In this document: positions 21,111 to 28,574 of the stretch, in pieces
Position numbering within the stretch: position 1 is the first letter of the stretch
How the letters are laid out: every line of letters starts with the position of its first letter
NCBI GenBank assembly: GCA_977020255.1
Contig: CDROCS010005962.1
Span: forward strand, 62,001 to 126,000
Reading direction: 5' to 3'
Length of the DNA: 64,000 bases
From: Obrimoposthia wandeli
Lineage: Eukaryota
Made by a program: the position numbers and the translations under genes
The notes under the pieces: model-generated
The model's database searches: none
Told to the model about the DNA's origin: nothing
Seen by the model: only the letters and a program-made list of their open reading frames with translations

Positions 21111-21140
21111 GTTCTGAAGCAGCAATGCTTTATAACTTCA

Positions 21141-21231
21141 GGTGAGATGGCTGAGTGGTCGAAAGCACCGGTCTTGAAAACCGGCAAGGGTTTGTAGCCC
21201 TTCTAGAGTTCAAATCTCTATCTCACCGCCA
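21141..21231 (+). tRNA. tRNA-Ser (anticodon TGA)
   Basis: GGTGAGA/TCTCACC acceptor stem, CCGGT-CTTGAAA-ACCGG anticodon arm, long variable arm, GTTCAAAT T-loop, GCCA end. Confidence 0.97.
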
Positions 21232-21240
21232 CATTAAGAG

Positions 21241-21273
21241 AAACCCGCTAATCGAAAGATTAGCGGGTTTTTT
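21241..21273 (+). terminator. tRNA-Ser terminator
   Basis: AAACCCGCTAATC-GAAA-GATTAGCGGGTTT followed by a T tract. Confidence 0.9.
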
Positions 21274-21291: not shown

Positions 21292-21474
21292 AAAGTTTGT
21301 AGCGCTAAACCTTCGAGTAGTGTTCAAATATCTATCTCGCCGCCACATTAAGAGAAACCCGCTAATTCGTATGAGTTAGCGGGCTTTTTGCTTTTTGAGC
21401 ATGAATAAAAAAGTTTGGTGCTTTGAAGTAATGGAACAAAGTTTGTAGCACTAAATCTTCGAGTAGAGTTCAAA
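21292..21474 (+). repeat. Degenerate direct repeats of the tRNA-Ser 3' half plus terminator
   Basis: 21323-21366 matches 21209-21252 at 42/44 nt, and 21438-21474 matches 21292-21328 at 34/37 nt. Confidence 0.85.
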
Positions 21475-21822
21475 CATCGACTTCAGCACTATAGTCCAAT
21501 TAAACTTCTGATTCTTTGCGTTTTTTATCTACATTTTATCTAATCTGTTGTAGTCTAGGGATAATGTTATTTGCTTGGAACTGCTTCTATTTAAATGGAT
21601 TTTTCGTCTGCCTGAAGTTAATGATGAGCCACGTTTGGTATTTAATGGCTAAGTTTGTATGTGCTTTCGTCATAACAATTGTGGAAAATAGCGTCGACAA
21701 GAAGTTAACATTACACTCGCTTTATGCTTAAAACGGCTCTGACCCTTTTTATCCTTGGATTAGAGATAAACGAAGAGCAAATAACGTAAATTAATAAAGT
21801 AATATAAAGGGACGTAAGAAGG

Positions 21823-23660
21823 ATGCTAGGAAACTGTTCATTTGACTATTTAGTCTCTCAAATCTTGAATAAAAGATGTGTTCCTGTAGCCGGAGCTGGA
21901 ATTTCACTATCTAGTAAAGACCCCGATAACGAAAATGTCCACAATGTTAGTTGGATGGTAGATACCTTAAAAAAAGAATTAACAAAAAAAAGGTTGGCAC
22001 GCTATGATGAATCTCTCCATGGAAACGTTTGCAAATGGGGATGTGCGAAAGAGCTTTCTAAATTTAATTTTGTAATATCTGAACAAAATTCATGTCGCTC
22101 TAATTGTTTTTTTTGTGATGTTTTTACGGCAGGAAAGTCCAACAAACTAGGTCATTTGTGTGAACTTTTTTTGTGGGAATTTGATTCATTAGAAGATGCA
22201 TATCAGAGTTTAGTCAAAATATTAAAAATTTCAAAATATAAAAATTTACTACCTACTCCTGCTCATATTTATATTGCAAAACTTGCCAGAGAAGGTTTGT
22301 TATCGGAAATTTTAACAACTAACTATGATTGTAATTTTGAAAGAGCTTATGACCTTATCACTTCCGGAAAAAATACAGATGTTATAACTAGCTTAGATGA
22401 TTATCGAAGAAGAGGTGTTCAATCAGATAACCTAAATCGTTTACAAGTTTATAAGATTAACGGCTGCTCAAACAATCTAGGCGATGCAAGTGATCCTAAA
22501 AAATGTGAATTAATACTATTAACTGAGCGACAACTCCAGAAATGGCGAAATAGGCAGTGGGCTGCGGATCTATTTCGAGACAGGTTACGTAGTAACTCAT
22601 TACTATTTATTGGATTCGGAAGTGATGAACCTCAGGTCCACCATACACTTCAAACTGTACTTGATGAGTATACTGATGATCCTATAAAGAATGGGCTAAG
22701 AGTACTGGATACGTTGAATGCACCAATAGTTGCGACTTTTGATCCCCAACCTAGTTTTCATCAACAGCAAATTGTTAAAACTTATGCTCAGCACCATAAT
22801 CAACCCGCCAAACAGGGAGATGAGCTAATAATTCGTCACCCTGAATCGAATAAAAACCTTTCTGCTGATTTATTATGGCAACTCCTCTATGAACGTATCA
22901 TAAGAACAAAAGTGATTGAAGCTCTAAGATCTAGTGCGCAATCTGCAAATGCTAGTTTCACATCCATCATTCCATTCTCATCAACTATTTTGACTCAAGC
23001 ACTCACTTGGTTTGAACGTGTGAAAAAAAGTGACAAGGACTTTGTTTCTAAATCTCCAAGTTGGTTAGAAAACTTTTTCAGTGAGTCATTTCCTGAAAAA
23101 AATAATACTAATCAATTTGAAATGTTAGTTCGATGCCTTTCTCAATTGAAAGGAAATACTTCTGATTATTATGAACCAGTTATCAATAATCAGGCATTAA
23201 TATCTGAATTTATTTTATTAATTTTTTTATTAAAAGGCTATATCTCTACAGAGATAAAAGGAGACCCTGAACGAGGGTTACTCCTAAATTTAAGTCAAAA
23301 AATTTAGTAAAAAAAGAACTTTATTTAAATGATCTTCCAATAAAAAGTACAGGTATGGAAAGAGTAAATAAAGTAATGGGTAATACCCACTTAATACTAA
23401 AACTTGGACTGGCAAGAGTTAACTCTATTCCTGATATTGAAAGAATAAAAAACGTTAATAATGAGACTGGGGCTTTAACACTAGAAACAATTATTACTCT
23501 GAATTGGAAACATATATTCACCGGGAATCATATTGCCACGAGGTAATATGGAGACCGTAACACTACCATCAAAGATGCAATAGAATCCCCAACAAACTAT
23601 TACTTTTCCAACCAACCTAGTATAAAAAAACGTACTTTTTTAAGAGAAATAACAGCATGA
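21823..23660 (+). pseudogene. SIR2-domain putative NADase effector, interrupted (main ORF 21823-23307)
   Basis: GAGIS, TTNYD, YKINGC and FIGFGSDE motifs. Adding one A to the A6 run (23297-23302) joins the 23355 ORF. After TAA 23544-23546 the same frame stays open to TGA 23658-23660, which overlaps the next ATG (ATGA). Confidence 0.8.
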
Positions 23661-24286
23661 ATAATCTTTTAGATATTGAACTACCTCAACTTGAGAATAG
23701 TACAAAAAAAATTATACCAATTTCAGTTCACTCTCGATCGGTCTGCAATTTATTAATTTTTAAGTCGCTGATTCAATCGAATGAAAAAATTGATTGGAAT
23801 AATATCAAAATAGCATTTGCTAGATTAATCGATAGACTGTCAGATTTATTAAGTGATTATCAACAGTTTGCACCTCTCATTATTCTTGTAGAAATTGAGC
23901 ACCAAAGAAATGAATGGAATCAACTTATGGGTGATCAAGATTGGCATCGAGGACGCTTTGTGATGCAGGAAGTTAAACTTTATAAAGGTCAAACTACAGC
24001 CGAAATAAAACAAAGATGGCTCTCTCCATTAAAAACAGGCGGTTATAATCCAGTTAAAATCACAGCCGAAGATTTATCTAAATTAGTTAAAGAGGCATTA
24101 GTTTATTCAAATCCACCTAAAGGCTCCTCTTCACAAATGTTTGGCAGGTATGTTGCAAATATTGTATTGCTATTAGAAATGGATGAAGCATGGCAGTTTT
24201 CTTTGAGTTGGCGAGATGAGTTACTAGAGGACATAAATAATGTTCTTGGTTATGACCTACTTGAGGAGCATGATTTTGCGAAATAA
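23657..24286 (+). CDS. Hypothetical protein; putative middle component (LmuC/ABC-3C MC-like by position)
   Basis: Intact 209-aa ORF coupled to both neighbours by overlaps. No motif recognised; the role is inferred from position. Confidence 0.6.
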   Translation: MNNLLDIELPQLENSTKKIIPISVHSRSVCNLLIFKSLIQSNEKIDWNNIKIAFARLIDRLSDLLSDYQQFAPLIILVEIEHQRNEWNQLMGDQDWHRGRFVMQEVKLYKGQTTAEIKQRWLSPLKTGGYNPVKITAEDLSKLVKEALVYSNPPKGSSSQMFGRYVANIVLLLEMDEAWQFSLSWRDELLEDINNVLGYDLLEEHDFAK

Positions 24287-26461
24287 TATTGAATTTATCA
24301 GAGAAATAGAACTAAAAAACTATAAAGGTTATCGTCAATCAGAAAAAGGTGTACCTAGAGTTTTTGACTTAAATGCCGACCTAATACTTATCACAGGAAA
24401 AAATGGTGTAGGTAAAACAACGCTACTTGAAGCACTTGATTGGGTACTTAATCATCCAGAGACTAATAATGGTGATGCTATTACGTCAGGTGAGGAAAAT
24501 GGATTTATCAGAATAAATGGAGAAGAATTTCCTGTTACTGGCAAGGGGACAGTAGATCGACATAATTTAAAGACAGTGTCTTCGTTTTTTTACCAAGAAA
24601 ATGTACAAGCATTAGCCTGTAATGAAGTCATTCAATTATTAGAGCCACAGAGCAATCCATCCGTTGAAATTAAGCAAGGTTTGAAAGAAATACAGCAAGA
24701 GTTAAAGCATTGGCAAAACCAATTAAATACTTTGAAATATAAGAAAGATTATGAAAAGTTTCGAAAGTTTTCAGCTGGTAAAATAAGTGAAATAGTAGAG
24801 CAACTACCTGATGAATCTGAGATAAAGCTAAGATTGAAAGAGAGAACCTTTATTATAAGTAATGGTAATTTATCAAGCGGTTGGATTTCTCAAGTAAATA
24901 ATCTAGCTGAGTCAATTGGTGAAATTAGTAATCGTGTTGAACCAGTAGGAGCAAAACTAGCTGAAAAGTTTATACACATAGGTACTTGTTTGCTTGAGTT
25001 CAAAAATTCTAAGCAAGATAATTTAGATAGAGATGAAAAACCGGTTCAATTGAATCAGAAATTACTTAAACATTTACAGCTTCTTCCGATTAACTTTTCT
25101 TTCAAAAGACAATCTAAAAAAGATAATAAAGTGCTTGGAACATGAATTATGTCTGAATATATAACACTGTCTGAAAGTACTATGCTAAAGGTCATTTAAC
25201 TTCAATTGATAATATTAATGCTTATTCGCCACGTATAAAGCATCTTGAGCAAGAACAAGAAAAGTTAAGGAAAGATTACCGACATTCATCTGAACAAAAA
25301 TTAATTATTTCAGATGAAAACTTATCAGTAATTGATTGGATTGACAGCTTCAAAGGGAATGTAGATAAGTGGTTACATGCATGGGATAACCATTCGGATA
25401 AAGAAAACGTATCATCTATTCAACGAAAGCTTAAAATGGAATTAAATGAATTGATGACGCTTTCTGTTAAACGAAATAAGGAAATTAAAACTGAGTTATT
25501 AAATATTGAATCTAAAGGAAAAAAAGTATCAGAAGAGCTGAACCTTCTTGTACGTGCCTTTAATGTGTTGAGAGATATTGAAGAAAATTCGAAGCAGTTA
25601 TTACCAATATTAGAAAAAGAATCTTTTTCGTTAAGTGAGCTACAAAATTTTGTAGAGAACCTACTCACTAAATCACAGGTGAAAGCTGTAAATGAAGTAT
25701 CAAATGAAATTGCTCTTGTTAAGGAGCTAGGTTACATATTTCAAAAGTGGGGGGATCTCGAAAAAGAAAAAGAATATGATGAAAAGAATGCTACAGATTT
25801 AGAGAAAATAGAGATGGTTGAATCAATGATTTCTAGTGCAAGTATCATTTGTAAATCAGAAGTTAGCTCGAAAAGTCAGTTTCTTTCACTAATAGGCACT
25901 ATACCTAAAGTAGAGTTGGAGTTACTTGTTGCAAATATGAATCAACTATTAGCTAGTTTTCATTTCCCAGATGACTTTTTACCTATTAGTTTAGAAAATA
26001 ATGGCAGAGGAGTTAACTGGGGGTTTAGAACAAACTCTGGTGTTAGGTTTGATGATTTATCTACAGGGCAAAAATCTCAACTAGCTATTTGTTGGACAAT
26101 AAATCTAAATTTGGTACTTACAGAGCGATTAGGTCACAAAGTAATTGGTTTTGATGATTTTACGACTTCACTAGATATGAATCAGATGATTCCAGCTTCA
26201 GTATTACTCAGAAAATTAGCTTATGCCAATGATAATGACACATCAAAAAGGCAGGTTATTATCACCAGTCACCACGAAGATCTTACTAATCGTTTTTTGG
26301 ACTTTCTTCTCCCGCCAGAGGGTAAAACGATGAAGGTTATTCAATTTGAAGACTGGTCTGTAAGTAATGGACCTAGTTATAAGTGTTATGATGTTAATAT
26401 GAATGAAGTAGATCAAGTCGGCCTAAAAGACGCAATAATAGGTGTAATGAGTACTGATTAG
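24270..26461 (+). pseudogene. SMC/Rad50-like coiled-coil ABC ATPase, split at ~25143-25176
   Basis: ATG 24270 after GAGGAG. The N-part has Walker A GKNGVGKT and Q-loop FFYQE. The C-part (frame open from 25175) has signature LSTGQ, Walker B GFDD and H-loop TSHH, with a Glu/Lys/Leu-rich coiled-coil-like middle. Confidence 0.82.
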
Positions 26462-26600
26462 TCTTATAAAAGTTGAGATAAGTACGAGTTTCATAAAAAA
26501 TTAACAGGGACACCCACTCAAATCCAGTCTGCTAAATAGCCTTACAAAGGATTAAACAGGCACAATGGTCGTGTTTTACACGAGCTAACTTATAACTAAA

Positions 26601-26671
26601 AAGTCAGATGCCGTAGTTCCGCACGACCGGTTCTGTAGGTGGACCCTAGTAATAGGACCCTCCACCTCGAT
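26601..26671 (+). mobile_element. Degenerate group II intron domain 5-domain 6 remnant
   Basis: AAGTCAGATGCCGTAGTTCCGCACGACCGGTTC resembles D5 consensus (GAGCCGGATGCG...CGCACGTCCGGTTC). It is followed by a GGTGGA/TCCACC hairpin with a CCTA-GTAA-TAGG GNRA loop and ends in CCACCTCGAT (AY end). Confidence 0.5.
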
Positions 26672-26686
26672 ACATATGAGGGTATT

Positions 26687-26788
26687 ATGAGTAAAGTTCT
26701 ACCTTTGGTGTTATTAACAACCTTTTTTTCAGGTTGTGCTATTTTTCCGCAGACTGAAAAATTAACAGGGACACCCACTCTAATTTGA
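26687..26788 (+). pseudogene. Truncated lipoprotein gene (signal peptide only)
   Basis: RBS GAGGG, then MSKVLPLVLLTTFFSG-C lipobox. The reading frame is fused to the 24-bp repeat after 24 codons. Confidence 0.55.
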
Positions 26789-27119: not shown

Positions 27120-28193
27120 TTAACTTTGACGTTGTGCGGTCAATGCTAAAATATTCTCTTGAGCTCGTATTAAGCTTTCACAGACACCTTGTTGATGCAT
27201 TACTGCCGTTTGCAATGCTACGTGGGCAATGGCGTTGTTCTGCTCTGCTATCATCATATTGGTCTTGCCAGCGATTAATGCTTGTATCGCAGCAACCCCC
27301 ATTTTAGTTGCTAATATTCTGTCTTTTGCCACCGGTGAGCCACCACGTTGTATATGACCAAGGATACAGGCAGTGCAATCGATATTGGCGAGTGTTTGTA
27401 ATTGTTGAGCTAAGGCAGAGGCACCACCTTGCCAGATATTTTCAGCCATCACGATAATATAACTTTCGTGTCGATTGGCTTGAGCAATTTTAATTTCTTG
27501 TGCTAATGAAAGCAGTTTTTGTTGTTCATCTTGGTGTTGATTTTTATGCTGTGTTTCATATTCTGCTTCGTTGGTAATCTGAGCAAAATTTTCAAAAGAA
27601 ATAATTTGTTCAGCCGCACAAGCAATGCCGGCGTTAAACGCGATATGACCGCTATGTCGGCCCATTAACTCAACAATAAATATGCGTTCAAAAGCATCTG
27701 CGGTATCACGTATTTTGTCTATTGCTTCAATGGCGGTATTAATTGCGGTAGAAAAGCCGATGGTAAAGTCAGTGCCGTCTATATCGTTGTCAATGGTTCC
27801 TGGAATACCTATCACTTGACCTGACCATTGCTCCTGCAAAGCAAGTAAGCCATTAAATGAGCCATCACCACCGATGACAATTAAGGCATCTATTTTTTCT
27901 TTCATTAACGTACTGCTTGCCTGTTGAATACCTAACGGGGTTTGCATAGCAGGGCAGCGGGCACTTTTTAAGATGGTGCCGCCTTTATGAATGATATGAC
28001 TGACCGTTTTTACGGTAAGTGGTACTGATGTGTCGTCAATTAAGCCGTTAAAGCCCGAATAAAAGCCGATGACGGTCATTTGATAATGTTGCGCGGCCAG
28101 CACAACGGCTCTAATGGCGGCATTCATTCCTGGTGCGTCACCCCCGCTAGTCAAAATGGCAATTCTTTTAATAGGCTTAATGTGTTCAGACAA
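27120..28193 (-). CDS. pfkA: ATP-dependent 6-phosphofructokinase
   Basis: LTSGGDAPGMN, GGTILKSAR, GGDGS, PGTIDND, ELMGRHSG, LGHIQRGG motifs; probable TTG start after GAGG. Confidence 0.95.
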   Translation of the reverse strand: MSEHIKPIKRIAILTSGGDAPGMNAAIRAVVLAAQHYQMTVIGFYSGFNGLIDDTSVPLTVKTVSHIIHKGGTILKSARCPAMQTPLGIQQASSTLMKEKIDALIVIGGDGSFNGLLALQEQWSGQVIGIPGTIDNDIDGTDFTIGFSTAINTAIEAIDKIRDTADAFERIFIVELMGRHSGHIAFNAGIACAAEQIISFENFAQITNEAEYETQHKNQHQDEQQKLLSLAQEIKIAQANRHESYIIVMAENIWQGGASALAQQLQTLANIDCTACILGHIQRGGSPVAKDRILATKMGVAAIQALIAGKTNMMIAEQNNAIAHVALQTAVMHQQGVCESLIRAQENILALTAQRQS

Positions 28194-28574
28194 TATTTTT
28201 CCTCGCGTTATTAGTAAGTGCATTATTAGATTGAGATTTTATGCTTTCTTTCTCATTGACTTAAATTAACAGTACCTACGGTAAAAATGAAATTGTGTTG
28301 CATTAAAATAAGCATAGTTTACTGTAGATCAATATTTACTATGATGGTGTTGTACCAGTTATATTAATTAAGTGATCATTTAAGGCCACCTAAATATCGA
28401 ATGCCTTTTTTTTCAATCACAATAGTCAGTTATTACTCAATCAAGCGGTATTAATAACCCGTATAAACTGTCATTGGCTGATGATGTCACTTGATCTAAT
28501 CACGCTAGACAATGAAAAGCGCTAGAGCTCAGATACTATAGTATTAAATACACCTAAAAACGGAACCGTATTAA

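Follow-up and report, generated by a model that had tools for sequence, protein, structure and literature searches.

The Three-Gene Block

A 64,000-nucleotide stretch of DNA from the Obrimoposthia wandeli assembly GCA_977020255.1 (contig CDROCS010005962.1, positions 62,001 to 126,000 of the forward strand; called the window from here on) was analyzed for a putative anti-phage cassette with the layout of the Lamassu and ATP-binding cassette (ABC) three-component (ABC-3C) systems. The cassette is a block of three genes on the plus strand (21823-26461), downstream of a tRNA-Ser gene with the anticodon TGA (21141-21231). The first is a pseudogene for a LmuA-like Sir2 effector (21823-23660), assigned by its open reading frames, the Pfam family SIR2_2 and alignment to an intact homologous gene. 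It is followed by an intact gene for a middle component of 209 amino acids (23657-24286), an open reading frame whose product shares 81-84% identity with homologues of the same length. The third is a pseudogene for a LmuB-like ABC ATPase of the SMC/Rad50 type (24270-26461), assigned by open reading frames, PADLOC, Pfam and alignment. The stop codon of the Sir2 gene and the start codon of the middle gene overlap in an ATGA at 23657-23660, and the middle and ATPase genes share 17 nt (24270-24286). The G+C content of the block is mostly 0.29-0.35, with one interval at 0.39 (22500-22999); that of the flanks is approximately 0.36-0.41.

An earlier reading of this DNA from its letters alone (the sequence-only reading) had described an AT-rich block of three translationally coupled genes directly after tRNA-Ser, two gene overlaps, and the motifs GAGIS, TTNYD, GKNGVGKT, LSTGQ, GFDD and TSHH. 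Open reading frames, the tRNA predicted by ARAGORN and the G+C profile confirmed the block, both overlaps are present in the sequence, and every motif was located in the window. That reading did not state that two of the three genes, those for Sir2 and the ATPase, are not open. The Sir2 frame runs from 21823 to 23307 (494 amino acids), and a 63-amino acid fragment of the same protein is encoded at 23355-23546. The ATPase is present in two pieces, an N-terminal one starting at 24240 or 24270 and ending at 25145, and a C-terminal one at 25436-26461 (second frame from approximately 25190).

Decay of the Effector and ATPase Genes

The intact operon of Colwellia psychrerythraea GAB14E (locus L001, contig JQEC01000045) served as the reference for the lesions. 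It encodes a Sir2 protein of 611, a middle protein of 209 and an ATPase of 728 amino acids. The sizes of about 610 and 730 amino acids in the sequence-only reading match these intact homologues and no open reading frame of the window. The DNA of the window is 88% identical to the Colwellia operon over 4.6 kb and differs from it by seven small indels. In the Sir2 gene, tblastn and the DNA alignment revealed a deficit of 1 nt at approximately 23290, within an A-rich run. Three further indels (−1, +5 and −1) at 23528-23562 put a patch out of frame that contains a TAA at 23544-23546, after which the frame closes at the TGA of the ATGA overlap. In the ATPase gene an additional nucleotide at 25144 creates a TGA at 25143-25145; with the losses of 1 nt at 25154 and at 25190, a net −1 frameshift remains. 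The middle gene is the only one of the three that is intact. Since the effector and the sensor gene each carry frameshifts and stops, the copy in the window is, judged from its sequence, most likely dead, and no working system is to be expected here. For the family, which is Lamassu-like in layout, the earlier call of a defence system is partly supported; the copy in the window is a pseudogenised remnant.

The ratio of nonsynonymous to synonymous substitution rates (dN/dS) relative to the intact homologue was 0.15-0.25 in all four clean segments. Consequently, the genes were under constraint until recently. Six flanking housekeeping genes, among them those for sulfate permease, MatE, PFK, pyruvate kinase and RpiR, align with their Pfam models over the full length, which makes a general assembly error an unlikely cause of the breaks. 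The low dN/dS values and the intact neighbours point to a decay that is both recent and real.

Alternatively, the frameshifts could be sequencing or assembly errors, in which case the genes would be intact in the organism and a working system would be present. The first Sir2 break does sit in an A-rich homopolymer stretch, and the indels comprise 1 nt (5 nt in one case), a type typical of long-read error. Public contigs, which probably stem from the same sample, match the locus perfectly where they could be placed, at a depth of approximately 3-4x and in short pieces, but of the pieces listed each stops short and none bridges a break site. However, the seven indels are clustered in 4.6 kb while the neighbouring genes are full length when compared to Pfam models, and the indels at 25144, 25154 and 23534-23538 lie outside homopolymers. 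Moreover, the cassette ATPase is also broken in several independent assemblies of an Alteromonadaceae population, so that decay recurs. We therefore regard artefactual frameshifts as improbable.

In these Alteromonadaceae (TARA assemblies and a metagenome-assembled genome (MAG); L003 8617-10787, also L004 and L006) the ATPase is split into 114 and 499 amino acids, and at locus L005 no ATPase gene was called. The frame is lost at a T-run within the conserved codons for SFFYQEN, the Q-loop. This split represents either recurrent decay or homopolymer-based on/off switching.

The Sir2 Protein

The Sir2 protein consists of an N-terminal SIR2_2 domain (Pfam E 4.8e-16) and a C-terminal domain of approximately 270 amino acids. 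Its motifs are GAGIS, a Cys-rich insert, TTNYD and K-I-N-G. An AlphaFold2 model of the intact protein (pLDDT 84.9, pTM 0.88) places the Sir2 domain at residues ~1-340 and the C-terminal domain at ~345-611; the latter is formed by helices, a six-stranded sheet region and terminal helices. A Foldseek search of the PDB returned ThsA, KomC, DSR2, Avs5 and the SPARSA Sir2 protein at the top with a probability of 1.00 and E values down to 1e-8. Thus, the Sir2 domain has the fold of these defence proteins. At the sequence level the best PDB chain for the intact protein reached only E 0.9, and the family profile matched solely the archaeal sirtuin 1ma3, over the NAD-binding motifs. A cluster search of the AlphaFold database (AFDB) with the model returned Sir2-domain matches alone, and an Atlas language-model search with the C-terminal domain gave sub-threshold scores throughout.

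The search for relatives of the Sir2 protein yielded 182 matches. SIR2_2 was matched in 43 of 43 family members, and G24, G26, S28, T166-N167-Y168-D169 and K211-x-N213-G214 are invariant in these 43 sequences, down to 26% identity. The same signature was found in the Thermosipho, Clostridiaceae, Spirochaetales and Azospirillum copies. An insert with four Cys residues is common to the proteobacterial branch of the family.

The motif K-I-N-G (K-V-N-G in Azospirillum) stands for the K-L-H-G of sirtuins, whose catalytic His is replaced by Asn (N213). This placement relies on the order and spacing of the motifs and on the strand-end position of N213 in the model, not on a residue-level superposition. 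With an Asn in place of the catalytic His, NADase activity is not assured. This is the main mechanistic uncertainty: the enzyme may use another base, it may be an ADP-ribosyltransferase, or it may only bind NAD+.

The Middle Protein

Middle proteins of 194-233 amino acids are encoded between the Sir2 and ATPase genes. They share the motif GDQDWHRGxF, which reads GDQDWHRGRF in the window and GADQGWHRGAF in Azospirillum, and the residues D63, D93, D95 and H97 are nearly invariant (alignment A4). An AlphaFold2 model (pLDDT 80) has an alpha/beta domain at the N-terminus, followed by a helical bundle at the C-terminus. The middle protein of the window has no Pfam, PADLOC, NCBIfam or PDB sequence match. 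A word-seeded search retrieved 11 relatives and an exhaustive profile search of 1.84 billion representatives 16; with just these 16 matches the family is small, and no named protein is among them. In the AFDB cluster search unnamed proteins were returned, and the scores of the Atlas language-model search remained below the threshold. The Atlas shape search with the N-terminal domain listed MComp1 (Middle Component 1) second of ten rows, with weak TM scores of 0.38/0.43; this fold likeness is a weak lead from modelled structures. The matches found by VIA-align were ERCC1, EME1, nicking-endonuclease and RPB5-type folds, and the Mre11 capping region at Z 6.

These matches bear on an alternative view of the effector. 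The Sir2 domain, having no His, might not be an NADase but an NAD+/ADP-ribose-binding or ADP-ribosylating module, and a lethal or DNA-directed activity might reside elsewhere, for example in the middle protein, which in its N-terminal domain is similar to restriction-endonuclease/ERCC1-like folds. This would agree with the invariance of the Asn in 43 aligned members and four further loci, with a KomC H146N variant deposited in the PDB with "NAD fragments" according to its title, and with the His-to-Ala variants of DSR2 that were used for structures with NAD+ bound. It would also agree with the structural neighbours of the middle protein (ERCC1, EME1, nicking endonucleases and McrC-like proteins), with its nearly invariant Asp and His residues and with its acidic motif GDQDWHRG. 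However, none of the structural matches of the middle protein rises above the noise (Z at most 7.3, TM below 0.45). Furthermore, GAGIS and the Asn and Asp of TTNYD are invariant, as for an active enzyme, the invariant residues H148, H274 and E269 could supply the missing base, and the effector in Lamassu is the N-terminal domain of LmuA. A non-NADase Sir2 domain is thus improbable.

The ATPase

The ATPase carries the Walker A motif GKNGVGKT, the Q-loop FFYQEN, the signature LSTGQK, the Walker B motif VIGFDD and the H-loop TSHH. The Walker A half and the signature/Walker B half are separated by a coiled-coil middle, and positions 228-492 of the profile match coiled-coil chains in the PDB. The Pfam families AAA_15, AAA_23 and SMC_N were detected. 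A search for relatives gave 78 matches, and across the family the ATPases comprise 675-760 amino acids. Their Walker B motif occurs as VIGFDD, VIMFDD, IMLFDD or VILLDD, with D627 and D628 invariant. A CxxC zinc hook is absent from the 24 ATPases that were checked (20 aligned members and four further loci). The sequence-only reading had already called the missing hook, the insert, the active site and the long unassigned C-terminal half of the effector atypical; these points proved to be real and fixed across the family, the active site with its Asn and the four-Cys insert in the proteobacterial branch.

A PADLOC search, as proposed in the sequence-only reading, identified LmuB (PDLC03859) as the best defence family for 20 of 20 ATPases, with a best E value of 1.1e-21 (approximately 74 bits), and LmuB matches both halves of the ATPase in the window. 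In the PDB profile search the N-terminus was closest to Rad50 (E 4e-6); PtuA N-termini were also matched, and no solved LmuB chain was among the best 60 matches. When the intact proteins were compared with PDB chains by sequence, the best E value of the ATPase was 0.045, and the middle protein had no match.

Distribution and Genomic Context of the Cassette

The sequence-only reading had asked whether homologues keep the three-gene order. The order Sir2/middle/ATPase, with adjacent or overlapping genes, was found in every locus examined, that is in more than 13 loci from distant genomes. These belong to Pseudomonadota, Thermotogota, Bacillota and Spirochaetota. The hosts are Colwellia, an Alteromonadaceae MAG, Vibrio cholerae, Burkholderia cepacia, Thiodiazotropha, Gilvimarinus, Vreelandella, Aliidiomarina, Leucothrix, Thermosipho, a Spirochaetales MAG and a Clostridiaceae MAG. 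The insertion sites vary: tRNA-Ser in the window, a site near tRNA-Met and rpoD in Colwellia GAB14E, and positions between housekeeping genes elsewhere. Thus, the cassette behaves as a mobile unit. No copy was detected in the viral contigs of IMG/VR, and plasmids contributed one distant copy alone.

The distant copy on plasmid AZO_p2 of Azospirillum lipoferum 4B (L021, 65415-69801) encodes a Sir2 protein, a middle protein of 217 and an ATPase of 675 amino acids, with the motifs KVNG, GADQGWHRGAF and VILLDD and no CxxC. It lies between a RAMP gene and the cmr1-cas10-cmr3-cmr4 genes of a type III-B CRISPR-Cas locus. The Burkholderia cassette has HipBA and ImmA-type genes as neighbours. With the tRNA hotspots, these surroundings agree with a defence neighbourhood.

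In Candidatus Thiodiazotropha endolucinida (L012, 8710-11175) a gene for an 821-amino acid protein with HD-CE and HATPase_c_3 domains (MORC-like) starts 4 nt before the stop codon of the cassette ATPase gene. This gene might encode a fourth component specific to the lineage, or it might be an adjacent defence gene.

Public annotations of the proteins as "recombinase RecF", "SbcCD ATPase subunit" and "NAD-dependent protein deacylase" would suit a housekeeping module for DNA repair and protein deacylation, composed of a RecF/SbcC/RecN-type ATPase and a sirtuin. According to the sequence-only reading, a grouping of the ATPase with these housekeeping families would have spoken against its defence call. 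The NCBIfam scores are far under the cut-offs, with 30.6 versus 172 for RecF, 20-21 versus 478.5 for SbcC and 19 versus 320 for CobB, and RecN did not appear in the NCBIfam scan of the ATPase. In addition, the cassette is patchy across phyla, occupies different sites in different genomes, is found inside a CRISPR locus in one case, and decays repeatedly. The RecF and SbcC scores remove the housekeeping reading, which we consider extremely improbable.

An intact triad is present on chromosome 2 of V. cholerae (L007, 9001-13620), flanked by a BOF-domain gene towards luxQ and by a CobQ-like gene towards HMG-CoA reductase. It encodes proteins of 609, 207 and 723 amino acids. The V. cholerae proteins correspond to the UniRef entries Q9KLL3_VIBCH and Q9KLL4_VIBCH, each found on at least 1,000 contigs; we take the mnemonic VIBCH to stand for strain N16961. 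The V. cholerae cluster is listed in 5,471 blocks of the sequence collection. An exact-motif scan of the genome contigs did not return a V. cholerae locus; possible reasons are masking of the stretch or a different representative genome. In the literature we found no description of the Sir2/middle/ATPase clade, of its motifs or of the V. cholerae locus, and the reviews of V. cholerae defence that we consulted do not mention the chromosome 2 triad. In a 2026 preprint that used DefenseFinder v1.2.0, the share of Lamassu among O1 defence instances is about that of systems which the pandemic strain is known to carry once (each 7 to 8%), which is indirectly compatible with DdmABC being the only Lamassu called by DefenseFinder. 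Nezha (SIR2-HerA) of classical V. cholerae was considered as a candidate and rejected, as it consists of two genes, one of which encodes a HerA helicase.

Relationship to Lamassu and Other Known Systems

Lamassu is among the commonest bacterial immune systems. It is equated with ABC-3C in the literature and is built from three proteins: LmuA, in which an N-terminal effector is joined to a C-terminal docking domain, the SMC/Rad50-like LmuB, and the small LmuC, also named middle component (PMC10586767). Effector, middle component and coiled-coil ABC ATPase had been recognized as this layout in the sequence-only reading, rightly so according to the published descriptions (PMC10586767, PMC12663957). 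Sir2 is among the known effector domains of Lamassu (PMC10586767; Millman et al. 2022) and has been reported in both long and short Lamassu (PMC12663957). In long Lamassu LmuB has approximately 800 amino acids, a Walker B motif hhhhDD and always one CxxC, whereas LmuB of short Lamassu has approximately 600 amino acids, a Walker B motif hhhhD[Q/S/T/E] and 0-2 CxxC (Haudiquet et al., PNAS 2025, PMC12663957).

The cassette shares with long Lamassu-Sir2 the order of an effector with C-terminal domain, a small protein and an SMC/Rad50-like ATPase. Common to both are also the N-terminal Sir2 effector, a C-terminal effector domain with helices and a beta-sheet, a Walker B motif of the hhhhDD type (hhhFDD in the family) and the placement in variable or defence regions. 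Long Lamassu with Sir2 was reportedly predicted by Millman and colleagues as early as 2022. The differences are the size of the ATPase (675-760 versus ~800 amino acids), the CxxC hook which is consistently present in LmuB of long Lamassu and missing in the family, the middle protein and C-terminal domain that have no HMM (hidden Markov model) link, and the Sir2 domain without catalytic His.

Short (type II) Lamassu, represented by DdmABC of V. cholerae, has the same three-part layout and gene order, and its ATPase can be hook-less. DdmABC is also the mechanistic template, because cryo-EM in 2025 revealed an A1B2C1 complex, sensing of DNA ends, and release and oligomerisation of the effector. 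In contrast to the cassette, its effector is a Cap4 nuclease, its LmuB of ~600 amino acids has a Walker B motif D[Q/S/T/E] where the second acidic position of the family is an invariant Asp, its LmuC is a DUF6521 protein, and its C-terminal domain is a helical bundle. The DdmABC families matched none of the cassette proteins by HMM or fold search.

The Sir2 NADases of defence systems, ThsA of Thoeris, DSR2, KomC of Kongming, Avs5 and the Sir2 protein of SPARSA, share the Sir2 fold and the motifs GAGxS and TxNYD with the cassette effector. By analogy, abortive infection through NAD+ depletion upon oligomerisation would be the expected output. These enzymes differ from the cassette family in their catalytic His (H171 in DSR2, H146 in KomC), where the family has its invariant Asn, and in lacking the four-Cys insert of its proteobacterial branch; the partners and sensors are entirely different. 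Rad50/SbcC with Mre11/SbcD shares the coiled-coil ABC architecture, and the N-terminus of the ATPase is closest to Rad50. Lamassu has been proposed to derive from SbcCD. The family ATPase differs from Rad50/SbcC by the absence of a zinc hook, by its much shorter chain and by a Walker B motif DD instead of DE, and the cassette contains no phosphoesterase partner.

On this basis we read the block as a recently inactivated, compact three-gene anti-phage cassette with a Sir2 effector, belonging to the Lamassu/ABC-3C superfamily by its architecture, and give this reading a probability of roughly two in three. At the level of architecture and ATPase affinity the assignment to Lamassu/ABC-3C is supported by the sequences. 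The cassette is a decayed member of a probably undescribed Lamassu-like Sir2 clade, where "undescribed" is provisional because long and short Lamassu subtypes with Sir2 have already been published.

Several observations weigh against this interpretation. No available family model covers the middle protein or the C-terminal domain of the Sir2 protein, so that two components out of three fall outside these models. HMMs for LmuC, Pfam MComp and DUF6521 matched 0 of 21 middle proteins, Pfam families for the C-terminal domain 0 of 43 Sir2 proteins, and the LmuA model PDLC03856 touches just 2 of 43, weakly (E 3.6e-5). With the model of the middle protein Foldseek found nothing significant in the PDB, neither Foldseek nor VIA-align returned a solved LmuC-like structure, and the best VIA-align match (Z 7.3) is within the noise range. 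For some ATPases the generic ABC model mad3 scores nearly as well as LmuB (4.3e-19), and the ATPase family fits neither the long nor the short definition of LmuB in full. To these points come the invariant Asn at the catalytic-His position in 43 aligned members and four further loci, the break sites that no placed public contig bridges, and the literature searched, in which no phage-defence or NAD+ data for any family member were found.

Some of these observations could also be explained by an independent Sir2 plus ABC-ATPase defence system that converged on the Lamassu layout, with a middle protein and a C-terminal domain unrelated to LmuC and to the C-terminal domain of LmuA. The missing HMM links of both, the absence of solved Lamassu chains among the structural matches, the modest LmuB similarity of 74 bits with mad3 close by, and the PDB profile search, which gave Rad50 and PtuA N-termini and no solved LmuB among the best 60 matches, would all be in line with such a convergence. 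Nevertheless, LmuB is still the best family for every one of the 20 ATPases, the DD of Walker B agrees with long LmuB (PMC12663957), and ABC-3C has precisely this order of effector with C-terminal domain, small protein and ATPase. Sequence methods are known to fail for LmuC and for the C-terminal domain of LmuA because of their divergence (PMC12663957), and the middle protein shows a weak fold match to Middle Component 1. Convergence is therefore unlikely, though we grant it some weight. A further possibility, which we put forward tentatively and hold to be less probable than its opposite, is that the family forms a separate, unrecognised branch of Lamassu-like systems. This branch would be marked by hook-less, mid-size ATPases with a DD Walker B motif, a His-less Sir2 domain and new families of middle protein and C-terminal domain, possibly with paired restriction-endonuclease-like folds as in XPF-ERCC1.

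Proposed Mechanism and Significance

The mechanism proposed for a Lamassu-like cassette follows the solved short Lamassu. In the intact relatives a dimer of the hook-less, Rad50-like ATPase would form a complex with the middle protein and the C-terminal domain of the effector, in which Sir2 would be held inactive as a monomer. The ATPase heads would sense phage DNA ends or replication intermediates, upon which the Sir2 protein would be released and oligomerise. It would then consume NAD+, and the infection would be aborted. Presumably the whole cassette is transferred together and inserts at variable sites of the chromosome, in this case a tRNA-Ser with att-like scars.

To our knowledge, only short, nuclease-bearing versions of Lamassu have been solved or tested in depth, and we found no functional data on Sir2-bearing Lamassu in the literature. 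The clade supplies a clean set of intact cassettes from several phyla, whose signatures are sharply conserved. With its missing zinc hook, its new adaptor proteins and its Sir2 domain without catalytic His, it is a test of how much change the Lamassu design allows. It also draws attention to an unstudied locus in the core genome of pandemic V. cholerae that is a candidate for defence. The repeated decay of ATPase and effector genes fits the view that abortive-infection systems of this kind carry a cost and are easily lost. Within the window little follows biologically, as this copy is most likely dead; the interest rests with the family and not with this locus.

The tRNA-Ser Hotspot and the Flanks of the Cassette

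The tRNA-Ser gene on the left side of the cassette (21141-21231, plus strand) was identified by ARAGORN and by Rfam (61 bits), and the terminator scan placed its terminator at 21238-21273 on the same strand. At 21295-21392 (plus strand; direct-repeat families D1-D3) the 3' part of the tRNA gene and the terminator recur as a second, degenerate copy. This copy is 94% identical over 49 nt, a 28-mer was matched with 3 mismatches where 0 such matches are expected by chance, and the terminator scan detected a second terminator at 21358-21383 within it. A third, more decayed copy with 61-77% identity is located at 21441-21512 (plus strand; families D1 and D2). In total, three tandem copies of the tRNA-Ser 3' end lie to the left of the cassette. 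The second copy resembles an att-type scar left by an earlier integration, and from their sequences the two tandem, progressively degenerate copies look like the scars of repeated site-specific integrations. The tRNA-Ser gene is an integration hotspot on the left side of the cassette. To the right of the cassette neither a tRNA 3'-end copy nor an integrase gene was found in the window; consequently, no intact att pair defines a mobile island at present.

In the Rfam scan of the window tRNA alone exceeded the threshold. A sub-threshold match to the small RNA sX4 at 21132-21264 (47.8 bits versus a gathering score of 70) is most likely caused by the tRNA, because it overlaps tRNA-Ser and its terminator.

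The right edge of the cassette is marked by two 28-nt direct repeats on the plus strand (AAAAATTAACAGGGACACCCACTC.AAT; repeat family D5, 96% identical) at 26496-26523 and 26757-26784. They flank 233 nt, with a start-to-start spacing of 261 nt, and the interval overlaps most of an open reading frame for 49 amino acids with a lipoprotein-like signal (26639-26788). Pattern searches for the repeats gave 2 matches versus 0.02-0.08 expected, and within the window a 12-mer of the repeats is confined to these two sites. The housekeeping gene for PFK, assigned by Pfam, follows on the minus strand at 27120-28223.

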